Shown here piece by piece: positions 1 to 29,262 of a stretch of DNA of 64,000 bases. Positions within the stretch are counted from its first letter, which is position 1. Each line of letters starts with the position of its first letter. A program made the translations under genes and the position numbers. The stretch lies in the IMG/VR virus record IMGVR_UViG_3300034072_002211, positions 1-64,000 of that record. One strand, written 5' to 3'. The notes beneath the pieces are model-generated. The model saw only the letters and a list, made by a program, of their open reading frames with translations. It ran no database searches and was not told where the DNA came from.

Positions 1-2475
1 AGGTCGGATGGTAACGGCAACAGCTCGCCCAACACTGGCTTCTTCCTCTACTTCAAGCAGGGCACACTACAGAAGACCGACTATGCGATCTCTGAGCCAC
101 AGGAAAACCGCACCATCTATCTGGATACCCAGAACGTCAACGAAACTGACGTGTGGGTTCAGACGGTTGATGACTTTGGTTCGCTTCTGCCAAACGGTGA
201 TTGGACTCGTGTGGGTCACGTCCCCAGCGACGATCTCGTCAAGGTTCTGCTGACTACTGAGAACATCACCTACAACTCCATTGATCCAGAGGTTCAGACG
301 ATCTACCAGGTCGTTACTCAAGAACAGGACCGCGTTGCTCTGAGGTTTGGTGACGGTCGCTTCGGCAAGTCTCCAGTTGGCAACCTGCGCGTTTGGTATC
401 GTGTTTCTGCGAATCAGAACCTCAACATTCGTCCTGAAGACATGCAGGGCATTAGCATCCAGGTTCCTTTCTACGCACGCAACAATACCCAGAAGCGCGT
501 GACTTTCACCTTTGCGCTTCAGGAAGCTGTCAACAACAGCGTGGCAAGCGAGACCAACGCTGATATCCGTCGTCGCGCTGCTCGTGCGTATGGCACCCAG
601 GGTCGAATGGTGTCTGGCTCGGACTACAATGAGCTGCCAGTCCAGACCAATCTGGCCGTCAAGCTCAAGGCCGTGAACCGCGTTTATTCTGGCCAGAGCC
701 GTTTCATCGATCTCAACGACCCAACTGGTAACTATCAGAACACTCAGGTCTTTGCTGACGATGGTGCGTTCTACCTGCTGGAGAAGAACGATTCCGTGGA
801 AGTTGCCCACACTGTGGCTTCCGTGGAAGAGATGATGACCAACTATATCGCGACTGTGGCATCTAGTGTTCCTCTGCGCGACTTCTACAGCAACTGGCTC
901 TACAGAAATCTACCAGCAGACCAAATCTACTTGCCAACCTATAATCACTTCTCCAACGACTATACGGCGCGTTCCGATACCCGCCGCGAAGTTCGTGAGA
1001 ACCTAGAACTCAACCGCACCTTTGCTCTGGGCTTCAACAACGACCCAGCTGAAGGTTGGTATGTGCTGAGCTCTAGCGAGATCAACCCTGATCTCACCGC
1101 TGGTTATGAGTTTGGAACTACGGCAAACCCTGGTCCGAACAGCTGGCTCATCCATGTGGAATACACCAGTGGCTTCTGGCGTATTACCAACCGCGGCCTC
1201 AACTATGTCTTTGAGTCGGAGCAGGACTGCAAGTTCTTCTTTGTTAGCGACTACAAGAGCATTGACCCCAACACGGGTAAGGCCGGTTCGGACACCATCA
1301 CGTTGCTCAGGGCACCTAACAACTTCAACGGTGTTGTGCTCAAGCGTCCTGATCCCAACAACTCGGCGGTACTCCAGGATGTCAGGCTCTTTGAGGATCT
1401 GGTCCTCAAGCTTGAGGCACCATTTGTCTACGATGACGGCTTCCATGAGCCTTCGCGTGTCAAGGTGCGCTTCAACGATCGTCTGAGCGATGGTATTCCA
1501 GACTTTCCATACACCTACAAGGCACTCAAGAACCTCGATCCCAGCAAGAATGCGATTGTTCACTTGAACACCTATGATACTGACGGCTATCCAGTGCAGA
1601 AGCTAGTCAAGCGTCTGAGCACGGGTGAGAACGGTGTGATCACTGGTCAGCTGATGCCAGGTGTGTTTGGCTTTGTGGAGCGCGTTGAAGGTGGAAATCG
1701 TCTGGTGAGCATCTACAAGGGTAATCCCGCCTACTTGACGCCAAAGGCCGCTGATATGGTTCTTTTCCCTGGTAGTGATTCGCTTCCTGTCACTGACCGT
1801 GCCGCTGATTTCGTTTCGGTTTCGGGTGACAAGTTCACGGTTCAGGAAGGTATCAACGGTCTGATCTACAAGTGGCAGCATTTTGCTCCATCGAACCATC
1901 GCATCGACCCAGCAATCTCGAACATCATCGATATCTTTGTTCTCACTCGTGAGTATAATGATTCGATGATCAGCTGGCGCAACGCTGGTGCTGTCTTGGC
2001 TGATATGCCCAAGGCCCCCAGCGAACTCAACCTGAGGACCACGTTCAATCCTCTCGAGGAGTTCAAGATGTTCAGCGATGAAATCATCTGGCGTCCGGTG
2101 AAGTTCAAGCTGCTCTTTGGACAGAGTGCTGCTCCTCAGTATCAGAGCAAGTTCAAGATTGTTAAGCTGGCGGGCACCGCAATGTCCGATGGTGAAATCA
2201 AGAGCCAGGTCATCGAAGCCATCCGAGATTTCTTCGATGTAAATAACTGGGAATTTGGTGAGACGTTCTTCTTCTCTGAGTTGGGTGCCTACATTCACAG
2301 GCGCCTCAGCACTTCGATTTCGAGCGTTGAAATTGTTCCAGTTCTCAATGATAGTTACTTTGGTAACTTGCGTGAAATTAGGTGCGCTCCCGACGAGCTG
2401 TTCTTCGCAACGGCACAGGTCAGTGACATTGACATCATCAGCGCAAACACGCCAACGAACCTCAGGATTAGGTAA
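1..2475 (+). CDS. Baseplate wedge subunit (T4 gp6-like), 5'-truncated by window edge
   Basis: Frame is open from base 1 (RSDGNGNSSPNTGFFLYFKQG...), upstream of the tracked GTG at 151; contains LRFGDGRFGKSP and AYGTQGRMVSGSDY, typical of myophage gp6-like wedge proteins; TAATG overlap with next gene. Confidence 0.7.
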   Translation, partial: RSDGNGNSSPNTGFFLYFKQGTLQKTDYAISEPQENRTIYLDTQNVNETDVWVQTVDDFGSLLPNGDWTRVGHVPSDDLVKVLLTTENITYNSIDPEVQTIYQVVTQEQDRVALRFGDGRFGKSPVGNLRVWYRVSANQNLNIRPEDMQGISIQVPFYARNNTQKRVTFTFALQEAVNNSVASETNADIRRRAARAYGTQGRMVSGSDYNELPVQTNLAVKLKAVNRVYSGQSRFIDLNDPTGNYQNTQVFADDGAFYLLEKNDSVEVAHTVASVEEMMTNYIATVASSVPLRDFYSNWLYRNLPADQIYLPTYNHFSNDYTARSDTRREVRENLELNRTFALGFNNDPAEGWYVLSSSEINPDLTAGYEFGTTANPGPNSWLIHVEYTSGFWRITNRGLNYVFESEQDCKFFFVSDYKSIDPNTGKAGSDTITLLRAPNNFNGVVLKRPDPNNSAVLQDVRLFEDLVLKLEAPFVYDDGFHEPSRVKVRFNDRLSDGIPDFPYTYKALKNLDPSKNAIVHLNTYDTDGYPVQKLVKRLSTGENGVITGQLMPGVFGFVERVEGGNRLVSIYKGNPAYLTPKAADMVLFPGSDSLPVTDRAADFVSVSGDKFTVQEGINGLIYKWQHFAPSNHRIDPAISNIIDIFVLTREYNDSMISWRNAGAVLADMPKAPSELNLRTTFNPLEEFKMFSDEIIWRPVKFKLLFGQSAAPQYQSKFKIVKLAGTAMSDGEIKSQVIEAIRDFFDVNNWEFGETFFFSELGAYIHRRLSTSISSVEIVPVLNDSYFGNLREIRCAPDELFFATAQVSDIDIISANTPTNLRIR

Positions 2476-5400
2476 TGGCCAAGAAGACTAATCGTAACCC
2501 ATTCGCGTTCACTCCGATTGTCCTGGATCAGGACAACCATGAGAAGCGCCGCGTCATCAAGCAGCTTCCTGCTGTCCATCAGACTGAAACGCTTCAGAAG
2601 TTCTTTGGCGCTTCCTTGGATCATCTCTTTGATCCAGGTAAGGGTAAGCCAATCAATGGTTACGTGGGTCAGAAGCCTCTTTGGTATGATCCTGATCAGG
2701 ACTATTACCTCGAAGAGGGAACGGACGACCGCACCTTCTACCAGCTGGAAGCCAGCATGGTCAGCAAGAACGTCGAGGGTCAGCTCACTGACCTTCTGCC
2801 TTATCCTGATCTGGTTAACCAGCTGCGCTTCCAGGGCGCTCTGACGAACAACCACAACAGGTTGTTCTCGCAGGATTTCTACACCTGGTGCCCACCCATC
2901 GATCTGGACAAGATTGTCAACTTCCGCCAGTATGTCTGGCTTCCAATTGACGACGTCGCACCAACGAGCACCTTTGAAGACGGTCAGACCGACGGTTGGA
3001 TCCTAGCCGATGGTACCCCAGCCCCTGTGAGTGGTCCATACTCAGGAATCAACAAGTTCGTTGGTCGATTCGCTGGCACTCCAGCTGGCGATCAGGTTGT
3101 CAGCAAGACCTTCACGCTGAATAGCGCAATCACGACTGCTAATGCTCAGTTCGACTTCCTTAAGTTGGACTCGTGGGACTACGCTGGCGGCTCTGCTGGT
3201 GTTCGTGAGCGTTTGGTCGTTTACATCAACGATCAGGTTGCTTTTGAATTCACCCCAGTTGGTATCTCAGGTGAAGGCGGTCTAAGCCTCGGTAGTGGCA
3301 CGATTTCGCTCGGCGATATTACCGGCACCTACAACGTGACCTCACCAGGTGTTGACACTCACCTGGGCGCTTCGGCGACTTGGACTGATCGCGTTTATCG
3401 TGTTACGGTCAATCTCACTGGCACTGGTAAGACCTTCAAGCTTGGCTTTGGTTCCACTACCAACCAGGCCATCGATGACGAATCGCTTGGTATCGACAAC
3501 GTTCGCGTTTGGCAGTCCAGCAAGACTGGTATTGAACTCAACGGTCCGACTCACAAGAGCATCAGTCCTGGAACCACCAAGGACTACTTCCTGCCAGGAT
3601 ATGGTCCAACCGGCGATCCTGAGCTTAAGAAGTTCTACGATCTCAGCATCCTGACTGACAAGCTGATCCATGCTGAAGTCGATGGCGTCTCGAGGTCGTT
3701 CACTTACGTTCCGGGTCAGGACAAGATCACCTTTGACCAGCGCCCAGCTGCTGACGCGGAAGTCTCGATCTCTGTTTATAGCGATCTTGAGAATAACGCC
3801 ATTGGCCTGCCAAACGCACGTCCCGAAGCTTTCGGTGGTGTTCAGCTGAGCTCTGGTATGAGGGTGATCATTACCCTCGATCGCAACTCGGATTTCAAGA
3901 AGAGCAACGTCTATATTGTTGAAGGCGTTGGTAGCAGCATCTTCCTCATCAAGGAAGAAGATTGGGGCGCGGGCGCAGCACCTGACTATATGGTCATGGC
4001 CCGTGGCGCAGCAAACCGAAATGAGTGGTCCACCCGTAACCGTTGGTTCCATGTCAGCACTCTGCCTGACAACATGGATCCAGACTATGTGTTGAAGCAG
4101 AGGGCAACTCGTCCAATCATTGAGTTCAACAGGGATCTGGAACTCTACAACTATGGTCTGCGTCGTCGACTCGACGTTGATCTGGTCGTGGAGAACATTG
4201 AAGACCTCAATGGTTACATGAACCAGTTTCCACAGGATGTGACGCTCGGTGGTGTTCGCATCACCACTCGCGGAACCACTCTGATCAATGTTGCGGCAGT
4301 TAACCCACGCACTGGCACCACCTACGGTGACGTGTCGAGCATCCGCGTGATGGTCCGCAACACCGTGAACCCACTGCTGAACAACAATGTCCTGGTTCTG
4401 GTAAACCAGGGTGGTGCTCTCAAGTTGATCCTTGAAACTGATGGTGAGAATCCATCGGGTGAGCCAGTTTACGGTGAAGTGTTCAACGTTCTGCTGGGCA
4501 GCTACTCGGGCAAGAACCTACACTGGGATGGTACCAACTGGGTTGAAAGCCAGCACAAGGTTAAGGCTAATCAGGCTCCTCTGTTTGAGCTCTATGATCT
4601 CAACGGCAACAGCCTGCGCGATGAGGGTCTCTATCCCAACAGCACTTTCAAGGGTTCGCGACTGTTTGGCTACAGGATTGACACTACTGGTTCGCGCATT
4701 GCGGATCAGGCACTTGGCTTGCCACTGATTCACGACAACAAGGGTCAGATCCAGTTTGAGAACTATCTCTCGACTGAGACCTACCAGTATGTGGTGGGCG
4801 GCAAGTTCCTCGATATCGTGGGCTTCTACTTCCACAAGGTCGGCAATATCGACGCTGAGCTAGAGACTCTGAGTAACGACTGGTATAAGGCTCCAACTCA
4901 GACTCGCCAGTTCATGGTTGACCGTTATGTGAGCGATGGCCGCACCAAGCTCTTCAACATCAGCCAGAACGCACAGGACATCACAGTGACCCGAGGTCGC
5001 GTGAATGAGAGCAAGTCCTTCGAGCGCACCACGCTGGTTGAAGACAAGGACTTTATCCGCGTTGGTCGTCAGATCATGATCATCAACATCCAGCTGGGTG
5101 ATGTGATTGAGATCCGCACCTACAGCTCTGAGAATCCACCGGCTGATGCCAAGGGTCACTATGAGGTTCCTCTGAACCTGCAGGCTAACCCAGACAACGC
5201 TGAGGTCGATTTCATGACCAAGGGCGACTTCTACGATCACTTCAGTGAGATCATGAAGAAGCAGGCTGGTTTCAAGGGTGCTGAATACAGCGACAACAAT
5301 TTCCGTGACACCCCCAAGGCGCCAAACCTCGGCACGCATATCATTCAGCACTCTGCTGGTCTGCTGAAGACCATGTTGCTGGCTGGTAACTCGCAGCTGG

Positions 5401-8400
5401 ATATTACCGCAGCTATCCGTTATGCTGATGCTGAGTATGCTCGCTTCAAGGACAAGTTCCAGAAGAAGATCCTCAGCTACACCTTCACTGGTCGTCTCGC
5501 AAATGCCGAGAACTATGACGTGTGGATCAACACGGCACTGGATGAGCTGAACAAGGGCAAGACCAAGCACTTTGCGTTCTACCTTTCGGGTATGGCGCAG
5601 AACGAGTCCAACCGTCTGCCAACGTTCATCCCACCAACTCCAAGTTTCCTCGGCGTCTACCCTCTGTATGCCCCTGAGCTGATCTCTCAGGAGGTCGAGG
5701 GCGCGGACGATGTCTGGTTCGTTCGAGGCCATGATGGTTCTCTGACCCTGGGTGAGAACGAAACTTGCGCCCGTGTGCTCCATGCTCTCGAGCTCAGGAT
5801 CTTCGACAGCGTTACGGCAACTGTTCGCTTGCGTGACCGTCCTGCTTGTGACTTCCAGGAAGCCTATAGTGATCAGTATCGAACCAACGAGTATTCCTAT
5901 GAGGAATACCTACAGGTTCTGCGCCCATCCTTTGAGCGTTGGAGCGTTGCTTACCGTCAGGATTACAAGGTCAACGACCTATCGGATACCACTATTGAGT
6001 CCAAGATCAACCGTAAGGCGAATCCTTGGATGTGGAACTGGTCGTCGGTCCCAATGGCCAATGGTCAGAGTGTCCCAGGTCACTGGCGTGGTATCTATGA
6101 GAAGTTCTATGGCACTCAGCGTCCTGATCTGACGCCTTGGGAAAGCCTAGGCTTTGCGATCAAGCCAGAATGGTGGGATGACCGTTATGGTCCAGCGCCT
6201 TACACCAGCGAGAACCTTGTTCTCTGGGATGATTTGGAGCAGGGTTATATCCATGAGGGTGAACGTCGCGGTATCAATGCCAAGTGGGCTCGCCCAGGTC
6301 TTCAGCAGTTCATGCCTGTTGACGCAAGGGGTCGCCTGCGCCACCCTGGTCCTCGCGATTTGATTGCTTACAATAATGTGACTGCTGACACTGATCTCAG
6401 CTACATTCCAGACCCAACCTACTTCACTGAAGAAAACGGCGGTGGCTGGTTCTGGAAGGTTGAGAACGACACCTACTTGGGTGATGAAGTCCGTGGTCGC
6501 TTTGAGACCAAGGCCGAAGCACTGGCTGACTACGTTCGCTCCTGGGAAGACCGTCACGATGACGGGGTGCTGGGTTGTGGCATCTGTCCTCAGGTTCCTC
6601 TTTACAGCGATCGCGCTGCTGACTGGAACTTTGGTGATATTGGTCCAGTGGAGCAGACTTGGAGGCGTTCGAGCGCATTCGCATTCGCTGCCGCAACTGC
6701 CGGCTATCTCATGAAGCCAGCAAAGTTCGTTGAGCTGGGCTGGAACACCCAGGACATTGGTCTGTTCTTCAAGAACACTCCAAACGAGCAGTGGCTGAAT
6801 CAGGATACCAAGGGCCGCCCACAGCATCGTGAGCTGCAGGTTCATGGCGAAGTCTTGGAAGATCTCAGCCTCGTGACTAAGGTTGGTATTCAGCAGTGGG
6901 TCAGTGACCTGCTCGCCAGCAAGAACACCGCAATCAACGAGAACTTCGCAACTCGCGTGCGCGGTCTGGGTTCACAGCTCAGCTATAAGGTGGCCGGTTT
7001 CACTGATAGCCAGACTCTGGTTGCAGTTACTGACGCATTTGGCCGCGTGCCAAGTGAAGATATCACTATCTCGCTCTACAGGTCACCAAGCATTCGTGAG
7101 GAAACCTACAGTGGTGTGGCAATTGAATACACCGGTCGTGGATATGAGATCTACGGTTATGACGCACTGAATCCTTACTTCAGTGTGATGGCTCCTGCCA
7201 TCCACGCTGGTAGGATCAGTGTTGGTGACGGCGCCAAGAGCGCAGCGGTTCCAAACTGGAACCCAGGCACCTATTACAGCGTTGATATCACGGTCAAGTA
7301 TCAGGACAACTTCTATCGTTCCAACAAGACCCACACCAGCTCTAGCTTCTTTGAGCCTGAGTTCTGGACGCAGGTTGCTCGCCCTCAGTATGCTGATGGT
7401 TCCACTCTGCTTTGGTATCTCGAGGGTGAACTAGACCCTGTTGCTGAGAAGATTGCCTATGGCACCGTGCTCAAGACGCCACAGGATGTCGCTGACTTCC
7501 TCAATGGCTACCAGCGTTACCTGGAATCTCGTGGCTGGATCTTTGAAAATCTGGGCGAGGATGAACAGGAAGTTCGCGATTGGAAGCAGGCACTGAAGAG
7601 CTTCATCACTTGGAGCCGCGCAGATGTTCGTCAGCCAGGCGATTACATCACTTTGAGCCCAAGCAGCAAGCTGGTTCGTTTCGCTACGGATCAGGGCACT
7701 ATTCAGCCCATCGAGCAGATCATCAATGGTCTCTATGCGATTGTGGATCAGAATGGCCAGCCCATTGACAGCCAGGCAACTCGCGTGGTTCGCAACGATG
7801 GCAACATCACAGTGACCTGTGACGCGTCTACGAGCGGCATCTTTGGTCTGAGGCTCTACGTAAGTGAACTGGAGCATGTTCTGGTCTTCAACAACAAGAC
7901 CATCTTCGGCGATACCATTTACTCGCCGCTGCTGAACATCAAGCAGCCACGTATTCGCCTTCAGGGCTTCAAGACTGTTGGCTGGAAGGGTCGCATTGAC
8001 GCCCCTGGTTTCATCGTTACTGGTGACCGTCTGACGCCAAACTTTGAACGTGCGGCTGACGACTTCCGTCGCTTCTTCGACATTGAATCCATGGAGAACA
8101 AGAAGCTTCAGGACCGTGCGCGTGCGAACTTTGGTTATGAGGAAAAGGAATACCTCAACAACCTGCTGCTCACCCCAACGAACCAGTTTGAGTTCTATCA
8201 GGGCATGATTCAGCAGAAGGGTTCTTCGACCTCGATGCGCCGTCTCCTGCGCTCCAACTTCATCCGCCACAACAAGGGCCTGAAGCTGTTCGAGGAGTGG
8301 GCATTCCGCGTTGGTGATTACGGCGGCCAGGAGGTTACGCCGCAGCTGGATATCCAGATTCGCCAAAGCGAGTTCAAGCACAACCCACAGCTGATTCAGT

Positions 8401-11400
8401 TCAGCAATGCTGTGACGCCAAACACCTATGGTATCATCGACGTGGTGGACCTCAATGTGGGTCAGGACAACCGCGCACTTGATGATCGTTGGCACTGGCG
8501 CCCAGACATGAAGGCAATTGAATGGCCACTCCGTGACTTCGGTCAGGGCGATGCTCCTCTGCCAACTGCTGGCTATGTGAACCTCGATGAAGTCCGCTTC
8601 ACAGTTGCCACCAAGGCTGAGTTTGAGGACTTCTTCGGTCAGCAAGAAGCTACCGATGAGCCCCTGGAAGCAGGCGACCGCGTTTGGGTTTACGGCATCG
8701 GTTCTGGCAAGCCAGAGGATTCGTGGATGACCTACAAGTTCCACGACACTGGTTACAACATCCTGAACACCTTTATGCCAACCTTTGAGGGTCAGGGCAC
8801 TGTGGTTCAGTTGGACCAGAACATCAAGGGTTATCAGAACGCTGACACAAACCCATGGAACACCACGTTCTATGTGGCTCAGCCTCTGCTGGCAGGTGAA
8901 AACGACGAGAATGGTAACGCAATCTCGGGCGAAATGCTGGTTCTCAAGAACCTCCAGGATGCTGACGTTAACCCACGCACTACCTACAAGCCAAGGGTGC
9001 TGGGCAAGGCAAAGCTGGCTCTCACTGGAACCAGTGGCACCACCGGCTTTGTGATGGGCTTCACTCCTGAGGCTCAGCAGATGATCCACAGGATCAAGGT
9101 TATTGTCGATGAACCATTCGCTGAGGGTTCCACGTTTGAGCTGGGATACCAGAACGACTTGGATGCTTTCGTGGCTATCCGTGAGGAAGATCAGAGGGAC
9201 ATTTATCCAACCAACTACGACAACGAAGCGGTGTTGGTTCAGACCCCTGCGACGTCCTACATGCCACCAAACGTCTCGACTGCTGACGTTGAATTGATCC
9301 GTGTGGGTCGAGTCTCGAACTTCTGTGCTCAGACGGTGGTTGAATGGTATTGGACCCGCAGCGACGGTTCTACGGCAAATGGCTCGGTGACGTTCCTGCG
9401 TCCTAGCGACGTTGTTGGTGACACTGACACGGATGATGCCTACCTGCAGACCATCCAGCTGCCAGTTACCCCTTCTGCTATGTCGGGCACATTGAGGGTT
9501 GTGACCAACGGTGTTCAGACTGACGTTCAGGTTCTGACTTTCCTCCGCACAAACCAGGCCGGCATCAACTCGGTTGATCTGACCCGTGCTGCTACCTATG
9601 AGTTCAGCCGCGCTGTCGGTATGTCCATGTATCCATGGAACACCAACACGGCTGGTGCTGATCGCGAGATGATCGCAACTCTGAACAGCCTTGGCACGCA
9701 GGGTTCTTTGCGCGTTGAGGTCGACTACTTCTACGTCAAGGGTTTTGAGCTTACCGAAGTGCTTAACGGCGCTGTGGTTCCAGCAACTTCCAACGTTGAT
9801 GGCGGCACCGCTGATGTGTTCACTTGGATTAAGACTCGCTACCCAAGCCTGAACGGCATCTCGGGTGCCCTACAGGACGGCGATCTTATTGAGGTTGACT
9901 CGGCACATGACACCCCAGGTCGTTGGGCTGTCTACAAGAAGGTCGTCAGTGAGTGGACCATCGTGCGTCGTCAGAATCGCAAGATCAACAGCGATCTCCT
10001 GACTAGCGCAGGTATCTTCAACAGCCAGGAGAACAAGCTCAAGCTGATTCTTCAGGTCTATGATCCCTACAAGGGCTTCATCCCAGGTGTCGCTGATCGC
10101 GAACTGGAATTCAAGACCTTTAACGATCCTGCGGTTTACAATGACGGTCGTATGATCTGGGGTAAGGAACAGGTTGGTAAGCTGTGGTGGGACCTCAGCG
10201 CTGTTCGCTATCTCGATTATGAAATCTATGACTCTTGGAAGTCGAATGACCACAGTGGTGTAAACTACCGCTGGAAGAACTGGGGCCGTGTTGCTCCAAA
10301 CTCCAGCGTGGATATCTACCAGTGGGTCAGGAGTCCAGTTGCTCCAAATGGCTGGTCTGACTACGTTGAGAGCAAGGCTGATCTGAAGATTGACAACAAG
10401 CCAACTGGCACTGTCGAGGAAGACGCCAAGTATGTCACCGCCACTGAGTGGAATGATGATATCCAAGCTGACGAGACAATCTATTACTTTTGGGTTAAGA
10501 ACCCAACGGTTGTTCCAACTCTGCCTTCGCGCAAGCTGTCGGCAAAGCAGGTCAGCAACATCCTCACGGATCCAGCAGCCAACGACATTCCGTTCTTTGC
10601 GGTCATTGACACCAACAAGGTGATCGTAGGTGGTATCAAGCAGTTCCTCAACGAAACTGATACGGTGCTCAAGATCAAGTGGCTCAAGGATGCTGAGATC
10701 ACCAACAACCACCACAAGCAGTGGATGATTCTGCGTGAGGAAGACGAGCGCAACACCATCAACGACACGCTATGGAACAAGATGCGTGACTCGCTGGTTG
10801 GTTGGGACTCGACTCAGAAGTATGTGCCTGATGAGAAGCTACCAGGGGCTCAGCAGATTGGTGCTATGGTTCGTCCTCGCCAGAGCTGGTTCCCAGCTGA
10901 TGCTTCGCCAAATGGCGGGCAGCGTCCAAGTCGTAGCGCCCGCGCGGCATTCGTGGATTGTCTGAATGACATCCTGAGTGAGCAGCCGTTCATCGACCAG
11001 TGGTATAACTGGAGCGAAGTGTTTGACAAGGGTGAGAACCTGCCAGCACCAGACCGCTACATCACCACTGCGCTGGATCTTGTTGATCTTCGCAACTTGC
11101 TGCCAGCGGCACGCAATATGGTTCAGCCCGGCGAATGCGTGCTCATTCAGAACACTGCAGAAGCTGCTGGTTTCTGGACCCTGTGGAAGCTGGTTGAAAT
11201 TGCTGGCCAGCGCCAGTTTATCCTCGAGGACTTCCAGAAGTGGAGGATGCAGGAGGGCGAACTGTGGAGTCTTGCTGATTGGTATGCTGATGGTTGGTCG
11301 GCTAAGAACTTCCCCAACTATCGTTTCCCAACCACTGCGGCACGCGATGCGGCAGGTAACTTGGACGTGACTCTGCTGAAGGGCACGTTGGTTCAGATTG

Positions 11401-13574
11401 ACCACAGCGATGGCGATGGCCGTTGGACTTGGGACGTCTACACCTCAACCTCGAAGTATCAGGTTGCTAAGGCGCGTTCCACGATGAAGCTCAGCGAAGC
11501 ATTCTATGATGATTCGCGCGTGGAGTTTGGTCCTCGCCAGGTGGCAGCAATCCTAGGCGCAAGTGAAGCAACCCGTATCACACCAGAGAGGATTCAGGAA
11601 CTCGCAGACATCATCAACTATCGCGATGGTTCAAGCGAGATTGAGTTCATGCTGAACACCATGAAGACTATCCTTCTGAACACCCTTCAGAAGAACAGGC
11701 TCTTCTTTGGCATGGTCAAGAGCGCGTTTAAGCAGAGCCAGGTCGTTGACTGGGCATTCAAGACGTCGTTCCTCTACCTGGGCGGCTATTCGGAGACCCT
11801 GCGTCAGAGCCCAGTTGCCTTCAAGGATCAGATTGACAACGTCATTGCCTACTTGGAAGAGGTCAAGCCATACCACGTCAAGATTCGTGAGTATGTGCGC
11901 CGACTGAGCTATGGTCCTGACCTTGCTGATCTGGCAATCACTGACTTTGACAAGCCTGTCTATCCAGACGGTCAGCGCAATCGCGTTCTCGACGTTAAGA
12001 ACGAGAACGACCGCAACATCATGGGTATCAACCGTCCTTGGAAGGATTGGTTCGAGAACTATGAGAAGGCACCAACGCCACTGACCAAGTGGGATCTGGA
12101 GTGGAACGGCGTTCGCAAGATGAACGTGACCATGAAGTTCGACCGCATTTCTTGCGGCACGGTTCGTGGTTGGGATACGGCTCCTTGGGATCCACCACTT
12201 CTCGTCTACAGCCAGATTGGCAGCAATACGCAGAGCCTCAGTCAGCTGAATGCTCTCTACAGGAATGTGAACACCCAGGGTGAGCTCAACTACTTCCGCG
12301 ATCAGACTGTGGAAACCATTGAGGAACGCAACTTCCTGGTGCGTAAGGGCATCATTACACCAGACCGTCCAGGTTCGATTGTAACTGTCCTTCAGGAAGG
12401 CTCCCACTATATGTGGACCGGCAACGAGTGGATCAAGTTCGAGGCCATTGGCTGGGATCAGGATCCCGACATGGGCACCGCAACCCGCATCGAAGATGCT
12501 TACCGTCCTCTGCCTGGTATGACCCGTAAGGATGATCCAGGTGTGATTGCTGGTTGTGAATTTGACGGCACGGTGATGACTGACACGTTCCAATATGACG
12601 CTTGGGACATCTTCGAGTGGGATTCCACTGGCTACAGCCAGGGTATCCGTGAACGTGCTGGCTTCGATCAGGAAACTGTTGATGGCAACACTACTCCTGC
12701 TGATGAGAACGATCCTGCTTACGTGGGCATCACTGGCAATGAGTTCAGCCAGCCAGCAGTGAACGGCGCACGTCCTCATGAGCTGGTTCAGATCCGTGGC
12801 GTTGAAAGCGTTGTGATCAACGTCCGCAAGGCTTCTGGCCCTTACATGAAGAACTTCATGAACGCACAGGGCAAGTGGCAGGACACTCTGGTCAGTCAGA
12901 GCGAAATGACGTTTGTTTCCTGGGATCAGAGCGCCCACTCAGTGACCCTGACGGTGCCTAGCTGGACTGAGGATGCTCAGGGCTACACGCCGCTACATGA
13001 CCCTCAGAACCCTTCTACGGGCTTCATCAAGAATGTCATGTTGAGCAAGGGTTACAGGTCTTCAAGCAATGTGGACATGAGTGCCGCAGGAACCAAGACC
13101 TTCAAGCTTCGCGATCTCAGTGATATTGATGGTATTCCAGCTGGTCTGAGGGGCGACAATGTGAACGTTGCGGTTGTGAACACCAAGGATCCAACCAAGC
13201 GCGCAATTGGTGTTCTGTCAAACAGCAAGGGTAGCGAAAAGAACTGGGACGGTCAGGTCACTATCACGTTCTCAACGGGCTTCGTGAACCTTGGTTCGGG
13301 TAAGAGCTGGAACATCATCCCAGTTGATATGTTCAACGAACCAGGCATCGTGTGGGTAGGTGACGCACGCTTCACCTACAACAGCATGACCCGCAATGGT
13401 TCGACTGTGGTCCTCGAAAATGCCTACCTGTCAGCAAGCACCTTGGCACCACTGAACATCACTGAAGATGGTGTTTCGCTGGTCAAGACTTCGCCGGTGC
13501 TGGACGGCTCTATCCAGCGCAGGATGGCAAGCAACCATTCTGACGCAGTGCCTCACGGCCCTAACAGGCCGTGA
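2475..13574 (+). CDS. Giant virion structural protein (baseplate wedge/hub, 3699 aa)
   Basis: Uninterrupted 3699-aa ORF between gp6-like gene and fibre genes; ends with YLEEVKPYHVKIRE-type segment seen in jumbo-myophage baseplate proteins. Confidence 0.7.
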   Translation: MAKKTNRNPFAFTPIVLDQDNHEKRRVIKQLPAVHQTETLQKFFGASLDHLFDPGKGKPINGYVGQKPLWYDPDQDYYLEEGTDDRTFYQLEASMVSKNVEGQLTDLLPYPDLVNQLRFQGALTNNHNRLFSQDFYTWCPPIDLDKIVNFRQYVWLPIDDVAPTSTFEDGQTDGWILADGTPAPVSGPYSGINKFVGRFAGTPAGDQVVSKTFTLNSAITTANAQFDFLKLDSWDYAGGSAGVRERLVVYINDQVAFEFTPVGISGEGGLSLGSGTISLGDITGTYNVTSPGVDTHLGASATWTDRVYRVTVNLTGTGKTFKLGFGSTTNQAIDDESLGIDNVRVWQSSKTGIELNGPTHKSISPGTTKDYFLPGYGPTGDPELKKFYDLSILTDKLIHAEVDGVSRSFTYVPGQDKITFDQRPAADAEVSISVYSDLENNAIGLPNARPEAFGGVQLSSGMRVIITLDRNSDFKKSNVYIVEGVGSSIFLIKEEDWGAGAAPDYMVMARGAANRNEWSTRNRWFHVSTLPDNMDPDYVLKQRATRPIIEFNRDLELYNYGLRRRLDVDLVVENIEDLNGYMNQFPQDVTLGGVRITTRGTTLINVAAVNPRTGTTYGDVSSIRVMVRNTVNPLLNNNVLVLVNQGGALKLILETDGENPSGEPVYGEVFNVLLGSYSGKNLHWDGTNWVESQHKVKANQAPLFELYDLNGNSLRDEGLYPNSTFKGSRLFGYRIDTTGSRIADQALGLPLIHDNKGQIQFENYLSTETYQYVVGGKFLDIVGFYFHKVGNIDAELETLSNDWYKAPTQTRQFMVDRYVSDGRTKLFNISQNAQDITVTRGRVNESKSFERTTLVEDKDFIRVGRQIMIINIQLGDVIEIRTYSSENPPADAKGHYEVPLNLQANPDNAEVDFMTKGDFYDHFSEIMKKQAGFKGAEYSDNNFRDTPKAPNLGTHIIQHSAGLLKTMLLAGNSQLDITAAIRYADAEYARFKDKFQKKILSYTFTGRLANAENYDVWINTALDELNKGKTKHFAFYLSGMAQNESNRLPTFIPPTPSFLGVYPLYAPELISQEVEGADDVWFVRGHDGSLTLGENETCARVLHALELRIFDSVTATVRLRDRPACDFQEAYSDQYRTNEYSYEEYLQVLRPSFERWSVAYRQDYKVNDLSDTTIESKINRKANPWMWNWSSVPMANGQSVPGHWRGIYEKFYGTQRPDLTPWESLGFAIKPEWWDDRYGPAPYTSENLVLWDDLEQGYIHEGERRGINAKWARPGLQQFMPVDARGRLRHPGPRDLIAYNNVTADTDLSYIPDPTYFTEENGGGWFWKVENDTYLGDEVRGRFETKAEALADYVRSWEDRHDDGVLGCGICPQVPLYSDRAADWNFGDIGPVEQTWRRSSAFAFAAATAGYLMKPAKFVELGWNTQDIGLFFKNTPNEQWLNQDTKGRPQHRELQVHGEVLEDLSLVTKVGIQQWVSDLLASKNTAINENFATRVRGLGSQLSYKVAGFTDSQTLVAVTDAFGRVPSEDITISLYRSPSIREETYSGVAIEYTGRGYEIYGYDALNPYFSVMAPAIHAGRISVGDGAKSAAVPNWNPGTYYSVDITVKYQDNFYRSNKTHTSSSFFEPEFWTQVARPQYADGSTLLWYLEGELDPVAEKIAYGTVLKTPQDVADFLNGYQRYLESRGWIFENLGEDEQEVRDWKQALKSFITWSRADVRQPGDYITLSPSSKLVRFATDQGTIQPIEQIINGLYAIVDQNGQPIDSQATRVVRNDGNITVTCDASTSGIFGLRLYVSELEHVLVFNNKTIFGDTIYSPLLNIKQPRIRLQGFKTVGWKGRIDAPGFIVTGDRLTPNFERAADDFRRFFDIESMENKKLQDRARANFGYEEKEYLNNLLLTPTNQFEFYQGMIQQKGSSTSMRRLLRSNFIRHNKGLKLFEEWAFRVGDYGGQEVTPQLDIQIRQSEFKHNPQLIQFSNAVTPNTYGIIDVVDLNVGQDNRALDDRWHWRPDMKAIEWPLRDFGQGDAPLPTAGYVNLDEVRFTVATKAEFEDFFGQQEATDEPLEAGDRVWVYGIGSGKPEDSWMTYKFHDTGYNILNTFMPTFEGQGTVVQLDQNIKGYQNADTNPWNTTFYVAQPLLAGENDENGNAISGEMLVLKNLQDADVNPRTTYKPRVLGKAKLALTGTSGTTGFVMGFTPEAQQMIHRIKVIVDEPFAEGSTFELGYQNDLDAFVAIREEDQRDIYPTNYDNEAVLVQTPATSYMPPNVSTADVELIRVGRVSNFCAQTVVEWYWTRSDGSTANGSVTFLRPSDVVGDTDTDDAYLQTIQLPVTPSAMSGTLRVVTNGVQTDVQVLTFLRTNQAGINSVDLTRAATYEFSRAVGMSMYPWNTNTAGADREMIATLNSLGTQGSLRVEVDYFYVKGFELTEVLNGAVVPATSNVDGGTADVFTWIKTRYPSLNGISGALQDGDLIEVDSAHDTPGRWAVYKKVVSEWTIVRRQNRKINSDLLTSAGIFNSQENKLKLILQVYDPYKGFIPGVADRELEFKTFNDPAVYNDGRMIWGKEQVGKLWWDLSAVRYLDYEIYDSWKSNDHSGVNYRWKNWGRVAPNSSVDIYQWVRSPVAPNGWSDYVESKADLKIDNKPTGTVEEDAKYVTATEWNDDIQADETIYYFWVKNPTVVPTLPSRKLSAKQVSNILTDPAANDIPFFAVIDTNKVIVGGIKQFLNETDTVLKIKWLKDAEITNNHHKQWMILREEDERNTINDTLWNKMRDSLVGWDSTQKYVPDEKLPGAQQIGAMVRPRQSWFPADASPNGGQRPSRSARAAFVDCLNDILSEQPFIDQWYNWSEVFDKGENLPAPDRYITTALDLVDLRNLLPAARNMVQPGECVLIQNTAEAAGFWTLWKLVEIAGQRQFILEDFQKWRMQEGELWSLADWYADGWSAKNFPNYRFPTTAARDAAGNLDVTLLKGTLVQIDHSDGDGRWTWDVYTSTSKYQVAKARSTMKLSEAFYDDSRVEFGPRQVAAILGASEATRITPERIQELADIINYRDGSSEIEFMLNTMKTILLNTLQKNRLFFGMVKSAFKQSQVVDWAFKTSFLYLGGYSETLRQSPVAFKDQIDNVIAYLEEVKPYHVKIREYVRRLSYGPDLADLAITDFDKPVYPDGQRNRVLDVKNENDRNIMGINRPWKDWFENYEKAPTPLTKWDLEWNGVRKMNVTMKFDRISCGTVRGWDTAPWDPPLLVYSQIGSNTQSLSQLNALYRNVNTQGELNYFRDQTVETIEERNFLVRKGIITPDRPGSIVTVLQEGSHYMWTGNEWIKFEAIGWDQDPDMGTATRIEDAYRPLPGMTRKDDPGVIAGCEFDGTVMTDTFQYDAWDIFEWDSTGYSQGIRERAGFDQETVDGNTTPADENDPAYVGITGNEFSQPAVNGARPHELVQIRGVESVVINVRKASGPYMKNFMNAQGKWQDTLVSQSEMTFVSWDQSAHSVTLTVPSWTEDAQGYTPLHDPQNPSTGFIKNVMLSKGYRSSSNVDMSAAGTKTFKLRDLSDIDGIPAGLRGDNVNVAVVNTKDPTKRAIGVLSNSKGSEKNWDGQVTITFSTGFVNLGSGKSWNIIPVDMFNEPGIVWVGDARFTYNSMTRNGSTVVLENAYLSASTLAPLNITEDGVSLVKTSPVLDGSIQRRMASNHSDAVPHGPNRP

Positions 13575-24880: not shown

Positions 24881-25200
24881 TACTGTGCTCCTCCGAAAGT
24901 AAGTTTGAAAAGGACCGCCAGGTCCTGCTTCTCGAAATACCAGCGATTACCGCCGCTGGTGTGCCAGTAGCTACCGGCGCGTTCCTCGCACCACTGCTTC
25001 ATTTCGGCCATCAGGGTGCTGTTGGGCTCCCTCAGGTCGACAGTGGTCATCTCCGGCCAGGCTTCCCGAAGGTGCCGTGACCAGTGCTTGTCTCGAGTGT
25101 TTGCGCCAATGGGTGGACAGAACTTGAGGCCCTGTTCCCGCCAGACCTTAAGGTAGGCCTGGGTAGCGAGGCTTTGTGCGGTTTTGAAATCCGTCGCCAT
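24880..25200 (-). CDS. Hypothetical protein, FxxxxDAxxFKL family
   Basis: EMKQWCEE...WYFEKQDLAVLFKLTFGG. Confidence 0.7.
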   Translation of the reverse strand: MATDFKTAQSLATQAYLKVWREQGLKFCPPIGANTRDKHWSRHLREAWPEMTTVDLREPNSTLMAEMKQWCEERAGSYWHTSGGNRWYFEKQDLAVLFKLTFGGAQ

Positions 25201-25658
25201 CAGTTGATCGCCGAGAATCGCTTGGTGATCGCATGGGCCTGCTCCTTGGTGCAGGGACCAATGCCGAGGGCGGTCACGATGGGGCTACCATCGAACGCGG
25301 TTCCTGGGATCACGTGGTTCTTGTCGATAATCAGCGAGGTGATCAGACCAGCAGCCTGGGCTTCTTCGTAAGCGCGCTGGAGAGCGGCTTCGTTCTTAGC
25401 CTTGAGGATGATCTGGGTGCCGATGAAGTCGGGGCCCTGATAGACCCGGAGCAACTCGGGATCGCGACGGCTCGCGAGGAGCACACAATTCTTGGCCGCG
25501 TGACAAGCCTGGCTTGCCATCTTACCCGGAGCCATGTCCAGGTCGCCGCGAATGATGCTGTAGATGCGAAGCTTTTCCGAGGCAGCTTCGAACGCCTCAT
25601 AGTCGTTGTCGTTGTCGTAACGAGCAGCGGCTTCCTACAGGAACGAATTGGTAAGCAT
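25200..25658 (-). CDS. pth2: Peptidyl-tRNA hydrolase type 2 (Pth2) with in-frame TAG at codon 8 (25635-25637); read-through or pseudogene
   Basis: LRIYSIIRGDLDMAPGKMASQACHA, IILKA, IID...T.LGIGP = Pth2 motifs; ATG 25658 preceded by AGGAG; translation MLTNSFL*EAAARYDNDNDYEAFEAASEKLRIYS... Confidence 0.85.
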
Positions 25659-25737
25659 TAAACTTCTCCTTCTCTTTTTGTCCAACATCGGACAACGCTC
25701 AACATAGGCACTCTTTTTCCTACGTCAACCGTTTTTC

Positions 25738-26106
25738 TTACCTCCAACGCAATTTGAACATCATTGCGTCTTTGCCATTCTCGAAAACCACACCCACGCT
25801 GGACGAGCAACCGCTGCTCCAGCCGACCTTTTTGAAGTCGCCGAACTTGACGTTCTCTTCCAACCAGGGAAGCATCTCAGAGAATGTTGAAGCAATAAAG
25901 CCTGTGATACGAACCAAATACCAACCGGGGTATTTGGCATTCACAGAATCAGCAAATTCGAGGTCAGGGAACTCATCCTCCTCGAACATACTGTTGAGCT
26001 TGGCCTCACCCAAGACACCATCGGTCTCAGGCTCTGCGAGGTCGTCGAACCACTCGTCGACATGCTCGTTATTGGGATTGTAATAGTAGGGGGTAAACGT
26101 CGTCAT
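25738..26106 (-). CDS. Hypothetical protein, FxxxxDAxxFKL family
   Basis: EMLPWLEEN...VVFENGKDAMMFKLRWR. Confidence 0.75.
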   Translation of the reverse strand: MTTFTPYYYNPNNEHVDEWFDDLAEPETDGVLGEAKLNSMFEEDEFPDLEFADSVNAKYPGWYLVRITGFIASTFSEMLPWLEENVKFGDFKKVGWSSGCSSSVGVVFENGKDAMMFKLRWR

Positions 26107-26172
26107 CTCTCATCTCACTCTTAAACCAAAATCACAGGGGACCTTGGGAGTGAGTGGAGGGGCTCGAGGGGC

Positions 26173-26196
26173 CTAGACGTGGATGTTGGTCTTCAT
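26173..26196 (-). CDS. Putative leader peptide MKTNIHV ending in TAG
   Basis: ATG 7 nt downstream of a TTGACT-N17-TATAAG promoter (26204-26232); followed by C-rich non-coding tract. Confidence 0.45.
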   Translation of the reverse strand: MKTNIHV

Positions 26197-26234
26197 GCTT
26201 CTACTTATACGCAGAAAGCGTGTGGAAGTCAAAA

Positions 26235-26675
26235 TTAGATCAATCCACGCTCATGGCACTCTTCGAGCACGCCACGATAGACGCGCATGTTGGGCTGATA
26301 CGGACCCCGGCCAAAATACTTGGCATCGTCCCCGTTGAGGGCCTTGTCGAGGGCCGCGCCAATGGCTGCGCTGCGGCACCGCCCCATGAGGCAGTGGATG
26401 TAGATGACGCTCACATCCTTGCTTTTCATGTCCTCCACGAAGTCGAGGACAGCTTCAGCATGGGTGGGATTGAACAGAATGCGAGCTTCCTCTTCGGGCT
26501 CACCATTCTTGTATTCGTCAATGTCATGGAACTTGAGGTTGAGCCTTCCAGTCAGGTGCTCGTTCTCATAGACCTCCGGAAAGTCACCTTTCTCGCAGAT
26601 GCTGATGAGCGCCCAAGGCTTGTCGGGCGGAGTTGCGGTCATCATGACCGCACGGCTGTAGACTACGAACTTCAT
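26235..26675 (-). CDS. Protein-tyrosine/dual-specificity phosphatase-like protein
   Basis: IYIHCLMGRCRSAAIG = HCxxGxxRS P-loop; ISI...LNLKFHDID. Confidence 0.85.
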   Translation of the reverse strand: MKFVVYSRAVMMTATPPDKPWALISICEKGDFPEVYENEHLTGRLNLKFHDIDEYKNGEPEEEARILFNPTHAEAVLDFVEDMKSKDVSVIYIHCLMGRCRSAAIGAALDKALNGDDAKYFGRGPYQPNMRVYRGVLEECHERGLI

Positions 26676-26705: not shown

Positions 26706-26981
26706 TCAACCCTCGATGCTGGAGATCTCGATCTCCAGATAATAGTCTTCAGCCATCATCTGGAGAACTCCGCCTTCGATCCATGCTTCTTGGCGAGGAT
26801 CGAACTCAGCCCAATCCAGAGAAGCCGGCGACACTGTGACGGCCTTTCCTTTGTGGTGTTGGACGAAGAGATCCATGGGAGCGAAAGCCGGTGGATTCTC
26901 GGCATCACGAGCTCGATACTTGCGGGCGCTGTAGGTCTGGCCATTGACCAGCTTGTCAGCTAGATCTGAACCCTTGCTCAT
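26706..26981 (-). CDS. Hypothetical protein
   Basis: 91 aa; ATGA overlap with upstream synthetase-like gene. Confidence 0.65.
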   Translation of the reverse strand: MSKGSDLADKLVNGQTYSARKYRARDAENPPAFAPMDLFVQHHKGKAVTVSPASLDWAEFDPRQEAWIEGGVLQMMAEDYYLEIEISSIEG

Positions 26982-27796
26982 TCACTCGGCTCCCTGTTGA
27001 TGTCGTCACGCTGGGCCTGTTGCCAGTTGTAGACGCAACGGTCGAGGCCGATGGCAATCTCGAGCACGAGCGCATCCTTTTCGACCAGACCTTTCTTGCT
27101 CTGGAAAGCCAGCTTCTGAGGGAAATCAGTCCGCTTGCTGATGCTGCAGACTTCCATCCACTTGTCGCCGTTCCAGACCTCGACGTCCATGGTGCGGAGC
27201 GAATAAGCGGGCAGACGATCACTCTCCACAAGCCGCGTCGGCAAGTGAATCTGAGAAGCGATCATCTTGCGGACCTTCTCCAGCATCTCTTCCTGATAGT
27301 CGAGAGCTGTGTCGGCGCTGTAGACGCACTGAAACTCCTGCTGGTAGAATTCCTTGAGCCGCATGTGCTTGGTTGGCTGGACGATCTCGCGCCGGAAACT
27401 CTTACCGGCCTGCCAGACGCAGAAGGGCGGGAAGATGCTCAGTTGATTGTTGAGCAGGTATTGCGCGTAGGCGTAGCTGCCGGGCGTCGTTTCGGGCCGC
27501 AGAGCCAGTTCACGGTAGCCTTGCCGCGCCTGCGTCAGAGCCTCGAACTCTTCTTCAGTTTTGGCAGGAGCATCCACGTCTTCCTGAACCCAGATATCCT
27601 GTTCGGTATAGTTGACGTTGAGGAGGTCGCGCGGAGTCAGCAGCGGTGCTTCCACGAAGAAGAACTTCCACTGTGGGTTGAGGGCAACAAGGTCCCGCTG
27701 AACTGTCTGGGCGAAGAAGTCCCGGAAGTGTTCGCGGAGCCGGATCTCTTCCTCACTCCAGAAGATCAGGCCGTTGATGTCAAAGGTATTCTGCAT
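26978..27796 (-). CDS. Minimal class II aminoacyl-tRNA synthetase, GlyRS (alpha2-type)-like catalytic core without anticodon-binding domain
   Basis: LRPETT (GlyRS LRPETAQ), motif 2 QAGKSFRRE...MRLKEFYQQE, WMEVCSISKRTDF, motif 3 VLEIAIGLDR; ends about 15 aa after motif 3 (272 aa). Confidence 0.8.
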   Translation of the reverse strand: MQNTFDINGLIFWSEEEIRLREHFRDFFAQTVQRDLVALNPQWKFFFVEAPLLTPRDLLNVNYTEQDIWVQEDVDAPAKTEEEFEALTQARQGYRELALRPETTPGSYAYAQYLLNNQLSIFPPFCVWQAGKSFRREIVQPTKHMRLKEFYQQEFQCVYSADTALDYQEEMLEKVRKMIASQIHLPTRLVESDRLPAYSLRTMDVEVWNGDKWMEVCSISKRTDFPQKLAFQSKKGLVEKDALVLEIAIGLDRCVYNWQQAQRDDINREPSE

Positions 27797-28716: not shown

Positions 28717-28792
28717 TGGCGCTCCCGGTGGGGCTCGAACCCACGACCCGCAGATTTAGAGTCCGCTGCTCTGCCAGCTGAGCTACGGGAGC
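28717..28792 (-). tRNA. Amber suppressor tRNA, anticodon CUA
   Basis: 76 nt: GCTCCCG-TA-GCTC-AGCTGGCA-GAGC-A-GCGGA-CTCTAAA-TCTGC-GGGTC-GTGGG-TTCGAGC-CCCAC-CGGGAGC-G-CCA; 7-bp acceptor, D-loop GG, U33, anticodon CTA at 28757-28759, encoded CCA. Confidence 0.95.
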
Positions 28793-28803
28793 ATGTAACC
28801 TGT

Positions 28804-29262
28804 TTAGGACTTTTTCTCCAAAGCGTCAAGCCGTGCGGCAATTTCCTGGACCAGTCGCAGCGTCTCCTCAGAGTTCTGCTTGATCTGCTCCTGCTCATCA
28901 TGAGTCCAGGCGTTGCTGTCTACGATCATGTGGGCGGCCAGCTTGGCCGTGATGATCGGTGCCACGAGGAAGGAGCAGATGTGCATGAAGATTGCGCCGA
29001 AGAATCGGCTGCTCGTGTGGGTTGGCGAATAGTCGCCATAGCCGACGGTGGTCGCCGTGACGCTGGCCCACCAGTAGCCCTCTGCGAGCTTCTTGCCCTC
29101 GATGAAGCTGAACATGACCGCTGCGAGGGTCATGATCAGTAGGTATGCGATCAACAGGCTGAATAACCGGTTGAACATCTTTTGCATCAGCGTGAGCTCT
29201 TGTCCCGCATGGACTGCGGTGCTCAGGATGTCGCTACCGGCTTGTTCGATCTGTCTACGCAT
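28804..29262 (-). CDS. Two-TM potassium channel (KcsA/Ion_trans_2-like)
   Basis: YWWASVTATTVGYGDYSP selectivity filter flanked by TM helices; GGAGG RBS. Confidence 0.9.
   Translation of the reverse strand: MRRQIEQAGSDILSTAVHAGQELTLMQKMFNRLFSLLIAYLLIMTLAAVMFSFIEGKKLAEGYWWASVTATTVGYGDYSPTHTSSRFFGAIFMHICSFLVAPIITAKLAAHMIVDSNAWTHDEQEQIKQNSEETLRLVQEIAARLDALEKKS

Follow-up and report, generated by a model that had tools for sequence, protein, structure and literature searches.

A conserved phage leader peptide with an in-frame amber codon and a predicted ribosome-arrest motif

A jumbo phage places a very short leader peptide, carrying an in-frame TAG followed by a known ribosome-stalling motif (Arg-Ala-Pro-Pro), directly ahead of a gene encoding a 122-aa protein (P0001), and this gene is probably translated only once the amber-suppressor tRNA of the phage is working. 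The layout is conserved in thirteen distinct related phage contigs and in the cultured Sinorhizobium phage Phosso, whereas in Agrobacterium phage Atu_ph07, which carries an opal suppressor, the corresponding stop codons are TGA. This data may suggest a mechanism by which read-through of the TAG leads to a RAPP-type arrest that frees the ribosome-binding site of P0001. The proposed read-through, arrest and regulation are inferred from sequence comparison and computation alone.

Genomic setting and sequence features

The window analysed here comprises the first 64,000 nucleotides of a 277,444-bp IMG/VR virus record (IMGVR_UViG_3300034072_002211) with about 53% GC. The element lies on the minus strand in a run of minus-strand genes, which are in order a K+ channel gene, a tRNA with anticodon CUA, a 209-aa ORF, a class II aminoacyl-tRNA synthetase catalytic core of 272 aa, a 91-aa ORF, a phosphatase-like protein (P0002), the 128-nt intergenic region in question, P0001, and a Pth2-type peptidyl-tRNA hydrolase. 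The features are as follows.

28804-29262 (-): small K+ channel-like protein (Ion_trans_2; PHROG 14690), immediately upstream of the tRNA-CUA and syntenic in several relatives
28717-28792 (-): tRNA with anticodon CUA (amber suppressor), the presumed decoder of the gate codon, 2.5 kb upstream of the leader
26978-27796 (-): class II aminoacyl-tRNA synthetase catalytic core without an anticodon-binding domain, a candidate charging enzyme for the tRNA-CUA
26235-26675 (-): P0002, phosphatase-like protein
26227-26232 (-): -35 hexamer TTGACT
26204-26209 (-): -10 hexamer TATAAG, after a 17-nt spacer
26176-26196 (-): leader codons before the TAG (MKTNIHV), with the ATG at 26196-26194, 7 nt after the -10 hexamer
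26173-26175 (-): in-frame TAG (gate codon)
26146-26172 (-): C-rich tract
26155-26172 (-): post-TAG codons A-P-R-A-P-P, with the RAPP core at 26166-26155; predicted arrest has CCT (26160-26158) in the P site and CCA (26157-26155) in the A site
26140-26159 (-): left arm of a predicted hairpin (anti-Shine-Dalgarno side), starting at the Pro codons
26107-26133 (-): right arm of this hairpin, covering the 15 nt before the P0001 ATG (the ribosome-binding site)
26110-26112 (-): TGA that ends the read-through frame
25738-26106 (-): P0001, the putatively regulated gene, with its ATG at 26106-26104, an acidic N-terminus and a conserved C-terminal alpha/beta domain
25680-25728 (-): promoter-like pair and small hairpin ahead of Pth2
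25200-25658 (-): Pth2 with an in-frame TAG at 25637-25635, the second amber-gated gene of the module
2475-13574 (+): a single open reading frame of 3,699 aa under the standard code, elsewhere in the window

A first-pass annotation of this stretch, made from the sequence alone, had described the promoter pair, the leaderless 7-codon ORF ending in TAG, the C-rich tract and the TGA shortly before the next ATG, and all of these features were confirmed on the minus strand. The exact promoter pattern, allowing one mismatch, occurs once in the window against 0.06 expected by chance; a generic promoter scan did not list it because the -10 box ends in G and lacks the usually invariant last T. A 7-codon ORF alone carries no weight, given that the record contains 938 ATG-to-TAG ORFs of 12 codons or fewer. 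However, the pattern of ATG, up to 12 codons, TAG, up to 7 codons, then R[AGSD]PP occurs exactly once in the 277-kb record, at this site.

Conservation in related phages

Conservation of the short ORF in relatives had been proposed beforehand as a check, and it provides the decisive evidence. A megablast search with 6 kb against cultured phages found no match, but searches with P0001, P0002 and the Pth2 protein recovered related jumbo-phage contigs from IMG/VR and from metagenomes. Gene order is conserved (synthetase-like, P0002, zero or one inserted gene, P0001, Pth2, a 106-aa ORF). Thirteen distinct sequences carry the element directly upstream of the P0001 homologue, whatever gene lies further upstream. 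In three relatives (locus records L002 3517-3903, L004 4441-4824 and L007 4437-4796) an extra ORF of 119-128 aa lies between P0002 and the leader, and the leader promoter overlaps its end. The C-terminus of this ORF resembles the conserved C-terminal motif of P0001 (DA-hydrophobic-hydrophobic-x-KL), and it may be a paralogue.

In the 13 leaders the -35 hexamer is TTGACT (8), TTGACC (2), or TTGACA, TTGATT and TTGCCC (1 each). Spacers of 17-18 nt are unrelated in sequence, and the -10 hexamer (TATAAG, TAAATA/TTAAAT or TATAAA) always lies 5-7 nt before the leader ATG. This distance leaves no room for a Shine-Dalgarno sequence, from which a leaderless mRNA is inferred; no RNA run was found to hold the locus, and the only DNA run that does is probably the source sample. 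The ATG is followed by 5-8 sense codons, kept at the peptide level with synonymous changes, then by TAG in all 13 leaders and in Phosso, and after 2, 4 or 6 more codons by Arg-x-Pro-Pro, in frame with the TAG in 13 of 13.

Two details of the first-pass annotation are not conserved. The likeness of the leader to the Pth2 minigene MLTNSFL (same length, T-N at positions 3-4) is treated by us as coincidence, as the leaders have 5-8 codons and most read MKK[IV]LTHH, while Pth2 leaders have 2-7 codons. The TGA located 3 nt before the P0001 ATG is not shared either, since the read-through frame ends in different places and frames in the relatives.

Codon-type conservation across the TAG

In the six MKKxLTHH-type leaders, over the 15 codons from ATG through TAG to Pro-Pro, variable sites fall 2, 2 and 11 at codon positions 1, 2 and 3, and pairwise codon differences are 87 synonymous against 21 non-synonymous. 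Immediately after Pro-Pro all three positions vary (7, 8 and 7 of 8). The Arg is invariant across the 13 leaders and is written with all six Arg codons (CGA, CGG, CGC, CGT, AGA and AGG), TAG and RxPP are in frame at three different spacings, and no start codon lies between them. RNA-level constraint cannot explain this pattern, and the anti-Shine-Dalgarno nucleotides shift relative to the codons between lineages. We take this as evidence that the TAG is translated, although actual read-through is inferred.

The arrest motif

The motif reads RAPP (7), RGPP (3), RSPP (2) and RDPP (1) among the 13 leaders, and RSPP in Phosso, which is the published arrest-competent or arrest-permissive set. RAPP and RGPP give robust elongation arrest that EF-P does not relieve and that tolerates varied upstream sequence, RSPP and RDPP are partially permissive, and all four are depleted from bacterial proteomes (PMC12992588); the motif class is further known from PMC10951233. 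In the proteome of this phage about 3 RAPP-like motifs are expected and 1 is seen, which does not by itself show avoidance of the motifs. Published RAPP arrests need about 10-20 upstream residues, and RAPP alone is not sufficient (PMC7897499). The whole 10-12-residue segment before the Arg is conserved here, which fits this requirement, but arrest with a chain of only about 13 residues remains a prediction. The only indirect support for the arrest is that peptide-level selection ends at Pro-Pro. One characterised RAPP peptide, ApdP, comes from Sinorhizobium, the host genus of a cultured relative of this phage.

A predicted hairpin over the ribosome-binding site

In all 13 sequences the minimum-free-energy fold is a hairpin whose left arm begins -7 to +4 nt from the first Pro codon and whose right arm covers most of the 15 nt before the P0001 ATG. 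For the window the fold energy is -26.7 kcal/mol (z = -2.49). The arm sequences differ between lineages but stay complementary. Since a plain MAFFT alignment of all 13 leaders is not structure-aware, and RNAalifold on the seven closest sequences gave only 11 consensus pairs (4 of them with compensatory changes), an alignment-free test was used, in which arms from the same sequence pair at a mean of -18.1 kcal/mol against -11.1 kcal/mol for arms from different sequences (permutation p about 5e-5).

In 13 of 13 folds the ribosome-binding site pairs with the stretch from -7 to +15 nt around the first Pro codon, and most of these partners lie beyond the reach of a ribosome terminating at UAG. In footprint modelling a ribosome with UAG in its A site does not reach the hairpin, whereas one arrested at RxP|P covers the partners of the ribosome-binding site. 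Modelled accessibility of the binding site is 0.40 with a terminating ribosome and 0.56 with an arrested one, and rises in 12 of 13 (p = 0.0007). However, in the subgroup of the window the modelled gain is small (0.22 to 0.31), because weak alternative pairings appear, and the ribosome-binding site of P0001 in this subgroup is a weak GAG-rich stretch. No terminator-like site was found between 26107 and 26196, no U-run follows the hairpin, and Rfam finds no RNA family here.

Suppressor tRNA, synthetase-like protein and Pth2

A tRNA-CUA is present in 8 of 8 loci whose flank reaches far enough (the window plus seven relatives), and in Phosso. Its anticodon loop and G73 are invariant and its acceptor stems covary. 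The nearby synthetase core is syntenic in all relatives whose fetched flank reaches that far. Its closest matches are GlyRS, HisRS and SerRS cores, far below family cut-offs, and Phosso annotates it as a serine-tRNA synthetase. Together, the two may represent a dedicated suppressor-charging pair.

The Pth2 gene has a Shine-Dalgarno sequence, an ATG, MLTNSFL and then the in-frame TAG, after which about 33 codons of conserved protein follow with no start codon before the catalytic domain. An early TAG after 2-7 codons is kept in close and distant relatives. Database annotations start this gene too late. Pth2 also has its own conserved promoter-like pair (TTGACG/TTGACA, 16-17 nt, TATGTT), followed by a small conserved hairpin (GTCC, a 6-nt loop, GGAC, at 25693-25680) that sits upstream of the Shine-Dalgarno sequence and covaries to ATCC...GGAT in one relative. 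More distant phage Pth2 genes (XacN1, Xoo-sp13, RsoM2USA, phiM19) have ordinary starts, so the gate is specific to this clade.

TAG is not generally recoded in this genome. Crude ORFs cover 88.7% of the record under the standard code, with stops TAA 173, TGA 170 and TAG 60 (60 of 403 ending in TAG). A codon-score scan for internal in-frame TAGs across the genome was dominated by antisense and out-of-frame noise; a pattern scan used in its place found the early-TAG gene pattern only at Pth2. In listing open frames, Q at TAG was a placeholder only.

For P0001 itself no Pfam, PHROG or NCBIfam family was found, and atlas leads were unnamed viral clusters. Foldseek against the PDB gave nothing at E <= 0.001, and VIA-align gave Z <= 5.9 to generic ferredoxin-, RRM- or ACT-like folds.

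Cultured relatives

Sinorhizobium phage Phosso has the leader (MNKKYTHL, TAG, then LHRSRSPPF), the hairpin, the P0001 homologue, a Pth2 gated as MKY-TAG, and a tRNA-CUA. Its annotation omits the leader, and in both Phosso and Atu_ph07 the Pth2 gene is annotated as truncated. Agrobacterium phage Atu_ph07 (MF403008.1) carries an opal suppressor, tRNA-UCA, as its only non-canonical tRNA (PMC6102473). There Pth2 is gated by TGA (MIGEHF-TGA), and upstream of the P0001 homologue (profile E = 6e-27), at 3541-3630 of the locus, MK is followed by TGA, IVFKPP and a TAG stop. The Pro-Pro codons and the stop pair with the Shine-Dalgarno region of the P0001 homologue. In this case a Shine-Dalgarno sequence precedes the ATG, and an annotated 53-aa ORF ends at the same TGA. 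The gate codon hence matches the suppressor anticodon in both genes. However, this rests on one lineage only, whose motif is KPP followed directly by a stop and not RxPP, and searches turned up no further TGA-type relatives.

A possible model of suppression-gated arrest

Based on this dataset, we hypothesize that the leader reports whether the amber-suppressor tRNA of the phage is active and gates translation of P0001. In this view a conserved sigma-70-type promoter starts the mRNA at or next to the leader ATG, and ribosomes translate 7 codons and reach the TAG. If release factor wins, the ribosome would leave about 13 nt before the hairpin, which pairs the region around the Pro codons with the 15 nt before the P0001 start, so that P0001 stays off. 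Read-through would lead to a RAPP-type arrest with a nascent chain of about 13 residues, and the arrested ribosome would sit on the left arm and free the ribosome-binding site. The analysis itself establishes the conserved layout, the peptide-level selection that crosses the TAG and ends at Pro-Pro, the covarying hairpin, the linked tRNA-CUA and the match between gate codon and suppressor anticodon, whereas the transcription start, actual read-through, actual arrest and the direction of regulation are inferred. We hold this model with moderate confidence. The adjacent amber-gated peptidyl-tRNA hydrolase may be involved in resolving the arrest, but this is speculation.

The interpretation given in the first-pass annotation, a tnaC-like attenuator in which suppression covers a Rho rut site and couples translation to the downstream gene, is supported only in part. 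The promoter and the leaderless start are backed by comparison, the TAG appears to be a regulatory decoding point tied to the phage suppressor tRNA, and read-through is likely to switch on the downstream gene. Two conserved features pointing to SecM/ApdA-like translational control, the RxPP motif and the hairpin over the ribosome-binding site, had been missed. The Rho mechanism is not supported and appears unlikely. It may be argued that the tract after the TAG is C-rich and G-poor in the window (C 0.63, G 0.11 over 27 nt), that an engineered switch of exactly this design exists, with a UAG in a tna/trp leader that unmasks a rut site (PMC6412442), and that an arrested ribosome would also block Rho. 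However, the C excess is limited to about 27 nt, is explained by Ala/Pro/Arg codons plus an anti-Shine-Dalgarno arm, is partly base-paired and is weaker in relatives (0.37-0.59). The remaining 31-42 nt have G equal to or above C in 11 of the 13 leaders, and only 58-69 nt lie between the TAG and the next ATG.

Read-through without arrest, in which ribosomes passing the TAG simply unwind the hairpin or terminate near the P0001 ATG and re-initiate, with Pro-Pro at most an EF-P-sensitive pause, is the least unlikely alternative. In 8 of 13 relatives the read-through frame ends within a few nt of the P0001 ATG, overlaps it or runs in frame into P0001, and any ribosome crossing the left arm would open the hairpin. 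On the other hand, in 5 of 13 the frame ends 17-31 nt upstream of the ATG, so that coupling through a nearby stop is not conserved; peptide-level selection stops exactly at Pro-Pro, and the invariant Arg and the restriction of x to A, G, S or D match the arrest motif and not a generic polyproline pause. An ordinary stop, with the 7-codon ORF a chance ORF or a bar-like minigene and the downstream sequence acting only as RNA, is very unlikely, although short ORFs are common and the hairpin alone could set a low constitutive level of P0001. Third-position variation continues across the TAG, six Arg codons are used, the in-frame spacing is kept at 2, 4 and 6 codons, and the gate codon switches to TGA in the phage with the opal suppressor. 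Equally doubtful is the view that the roughly 28-residue read-through product is itself a functional small protein whose position upstream of P0001 is incidental. The frame is open for 12-27 codons after the TAG in all relatives, but length, sequence, stop position and frame after Pro-Pro are all unconserved.

We consider it slightly more likely than not that the element is a natural sensor of genetic-code switching, in which an arrest peptide of roughly 13 residues can only be completed by decoding the stop codon of the phage's own suppressor (TAG with tRNA-CUA, TGA with tRNA-UCA), so that P0001 would be translated, and the amber-gated Pth2 produced, only when suppression is active. It would be the shortest RAPP-type arrest peptide known and the first whose input is stop-codon suppression. 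If the model holds, it gives a natural counterpart to engineered amber-suppression gene switches, extends RAPP arrest peptides to phages, to chains far shorter than any studied so far and to an input other than protein export, and shows that phages with suppressor tRNAs can wire specific genes (P0001 and Pth2) to suppression activity without recoding the whole genome, which bears on how stop-codon reassignment begins. The system is directly testable, as Phosso and Atu_ph07 represent cultured relatives with the TAG and the TGA version, respectively.

Relation to known systems

RAPP-type arrest peptides (ApdA, ApdP, the Streptomyces RAPP/RGPP uORFs) and SecM (RAGP) share with this element an Arg-x-Pro-Pro core near the end of a small ORF, upstream of and co-oriented with a regulated gene (PMC12992588, PMC10951233, PMC7897499); here, six to more than 21 unconserved codons follow the motif. 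As in SecM-secA, a hairpin hides the downstream Shine-Dalgarno region and the predicted arrest site lies on its left arm. Known members are about 100-200 residues long, have secretion or membrane signals, and are released by translocation force. In the present case the chain at arrest would be about 13 residues, and with 5-8 residues before the TAG and 10-12 before the Arg there is no room for a signal peptide. The mRNA looks leaderless, the element is phage-encoded, and the predicted arrest would be reached only after an in-frame stop codon is decoded. No sequence homology can be claimed.

In TnaC and the tna operon leader, the translation state of a leader peptide controls the downstream gene, and the engineered version uses amber suppression in a leader as its input (PMC6412442, section 6); full-text searches found no natural example in phages. 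The leader described here has no conserved Trp, no stall at its own stop, no convincing rut site and no evidence for Rho, and control appears to be translational, through a Shine-Dalgarno-sequestering hairpin. Classical amino-acid attenuators (trpL, hisL, pheL) likewise sense the supply of one charged tRNA through one or a few regulatory codons of a short leader peptide. In our model the sensed species is a suppressor tRNA competing with a release factor, and there is no terminator/antiterminator pair and no U-run after the hairpin. In lambda bar-type minigenes, a conserved last sense codon sequesters a specific tRNA as peptidyl-tRNA; here the last sense codon before the TAG varies (GTC, CAC, TTG, TAT; Val, His, Leu, Tyr) and selection continues past the stop.

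Stop-codon recoding in phages (TAG or TGA reassigned, with suppressor tRNAs; bioRxiv 10.1101/2021.08.26.457843, PMC9523058) likewise involves a phage-encoded suppressor tRNA, and in-frame stop codons proposed to control translation timing. Those phages carry in-frame stops throughout many late genes, whereas here TAG still ends 60 of 403 crude ORFs, and conserved in-frame TAGs were found at only two regulatory positions, the leader and the start of Pth2.
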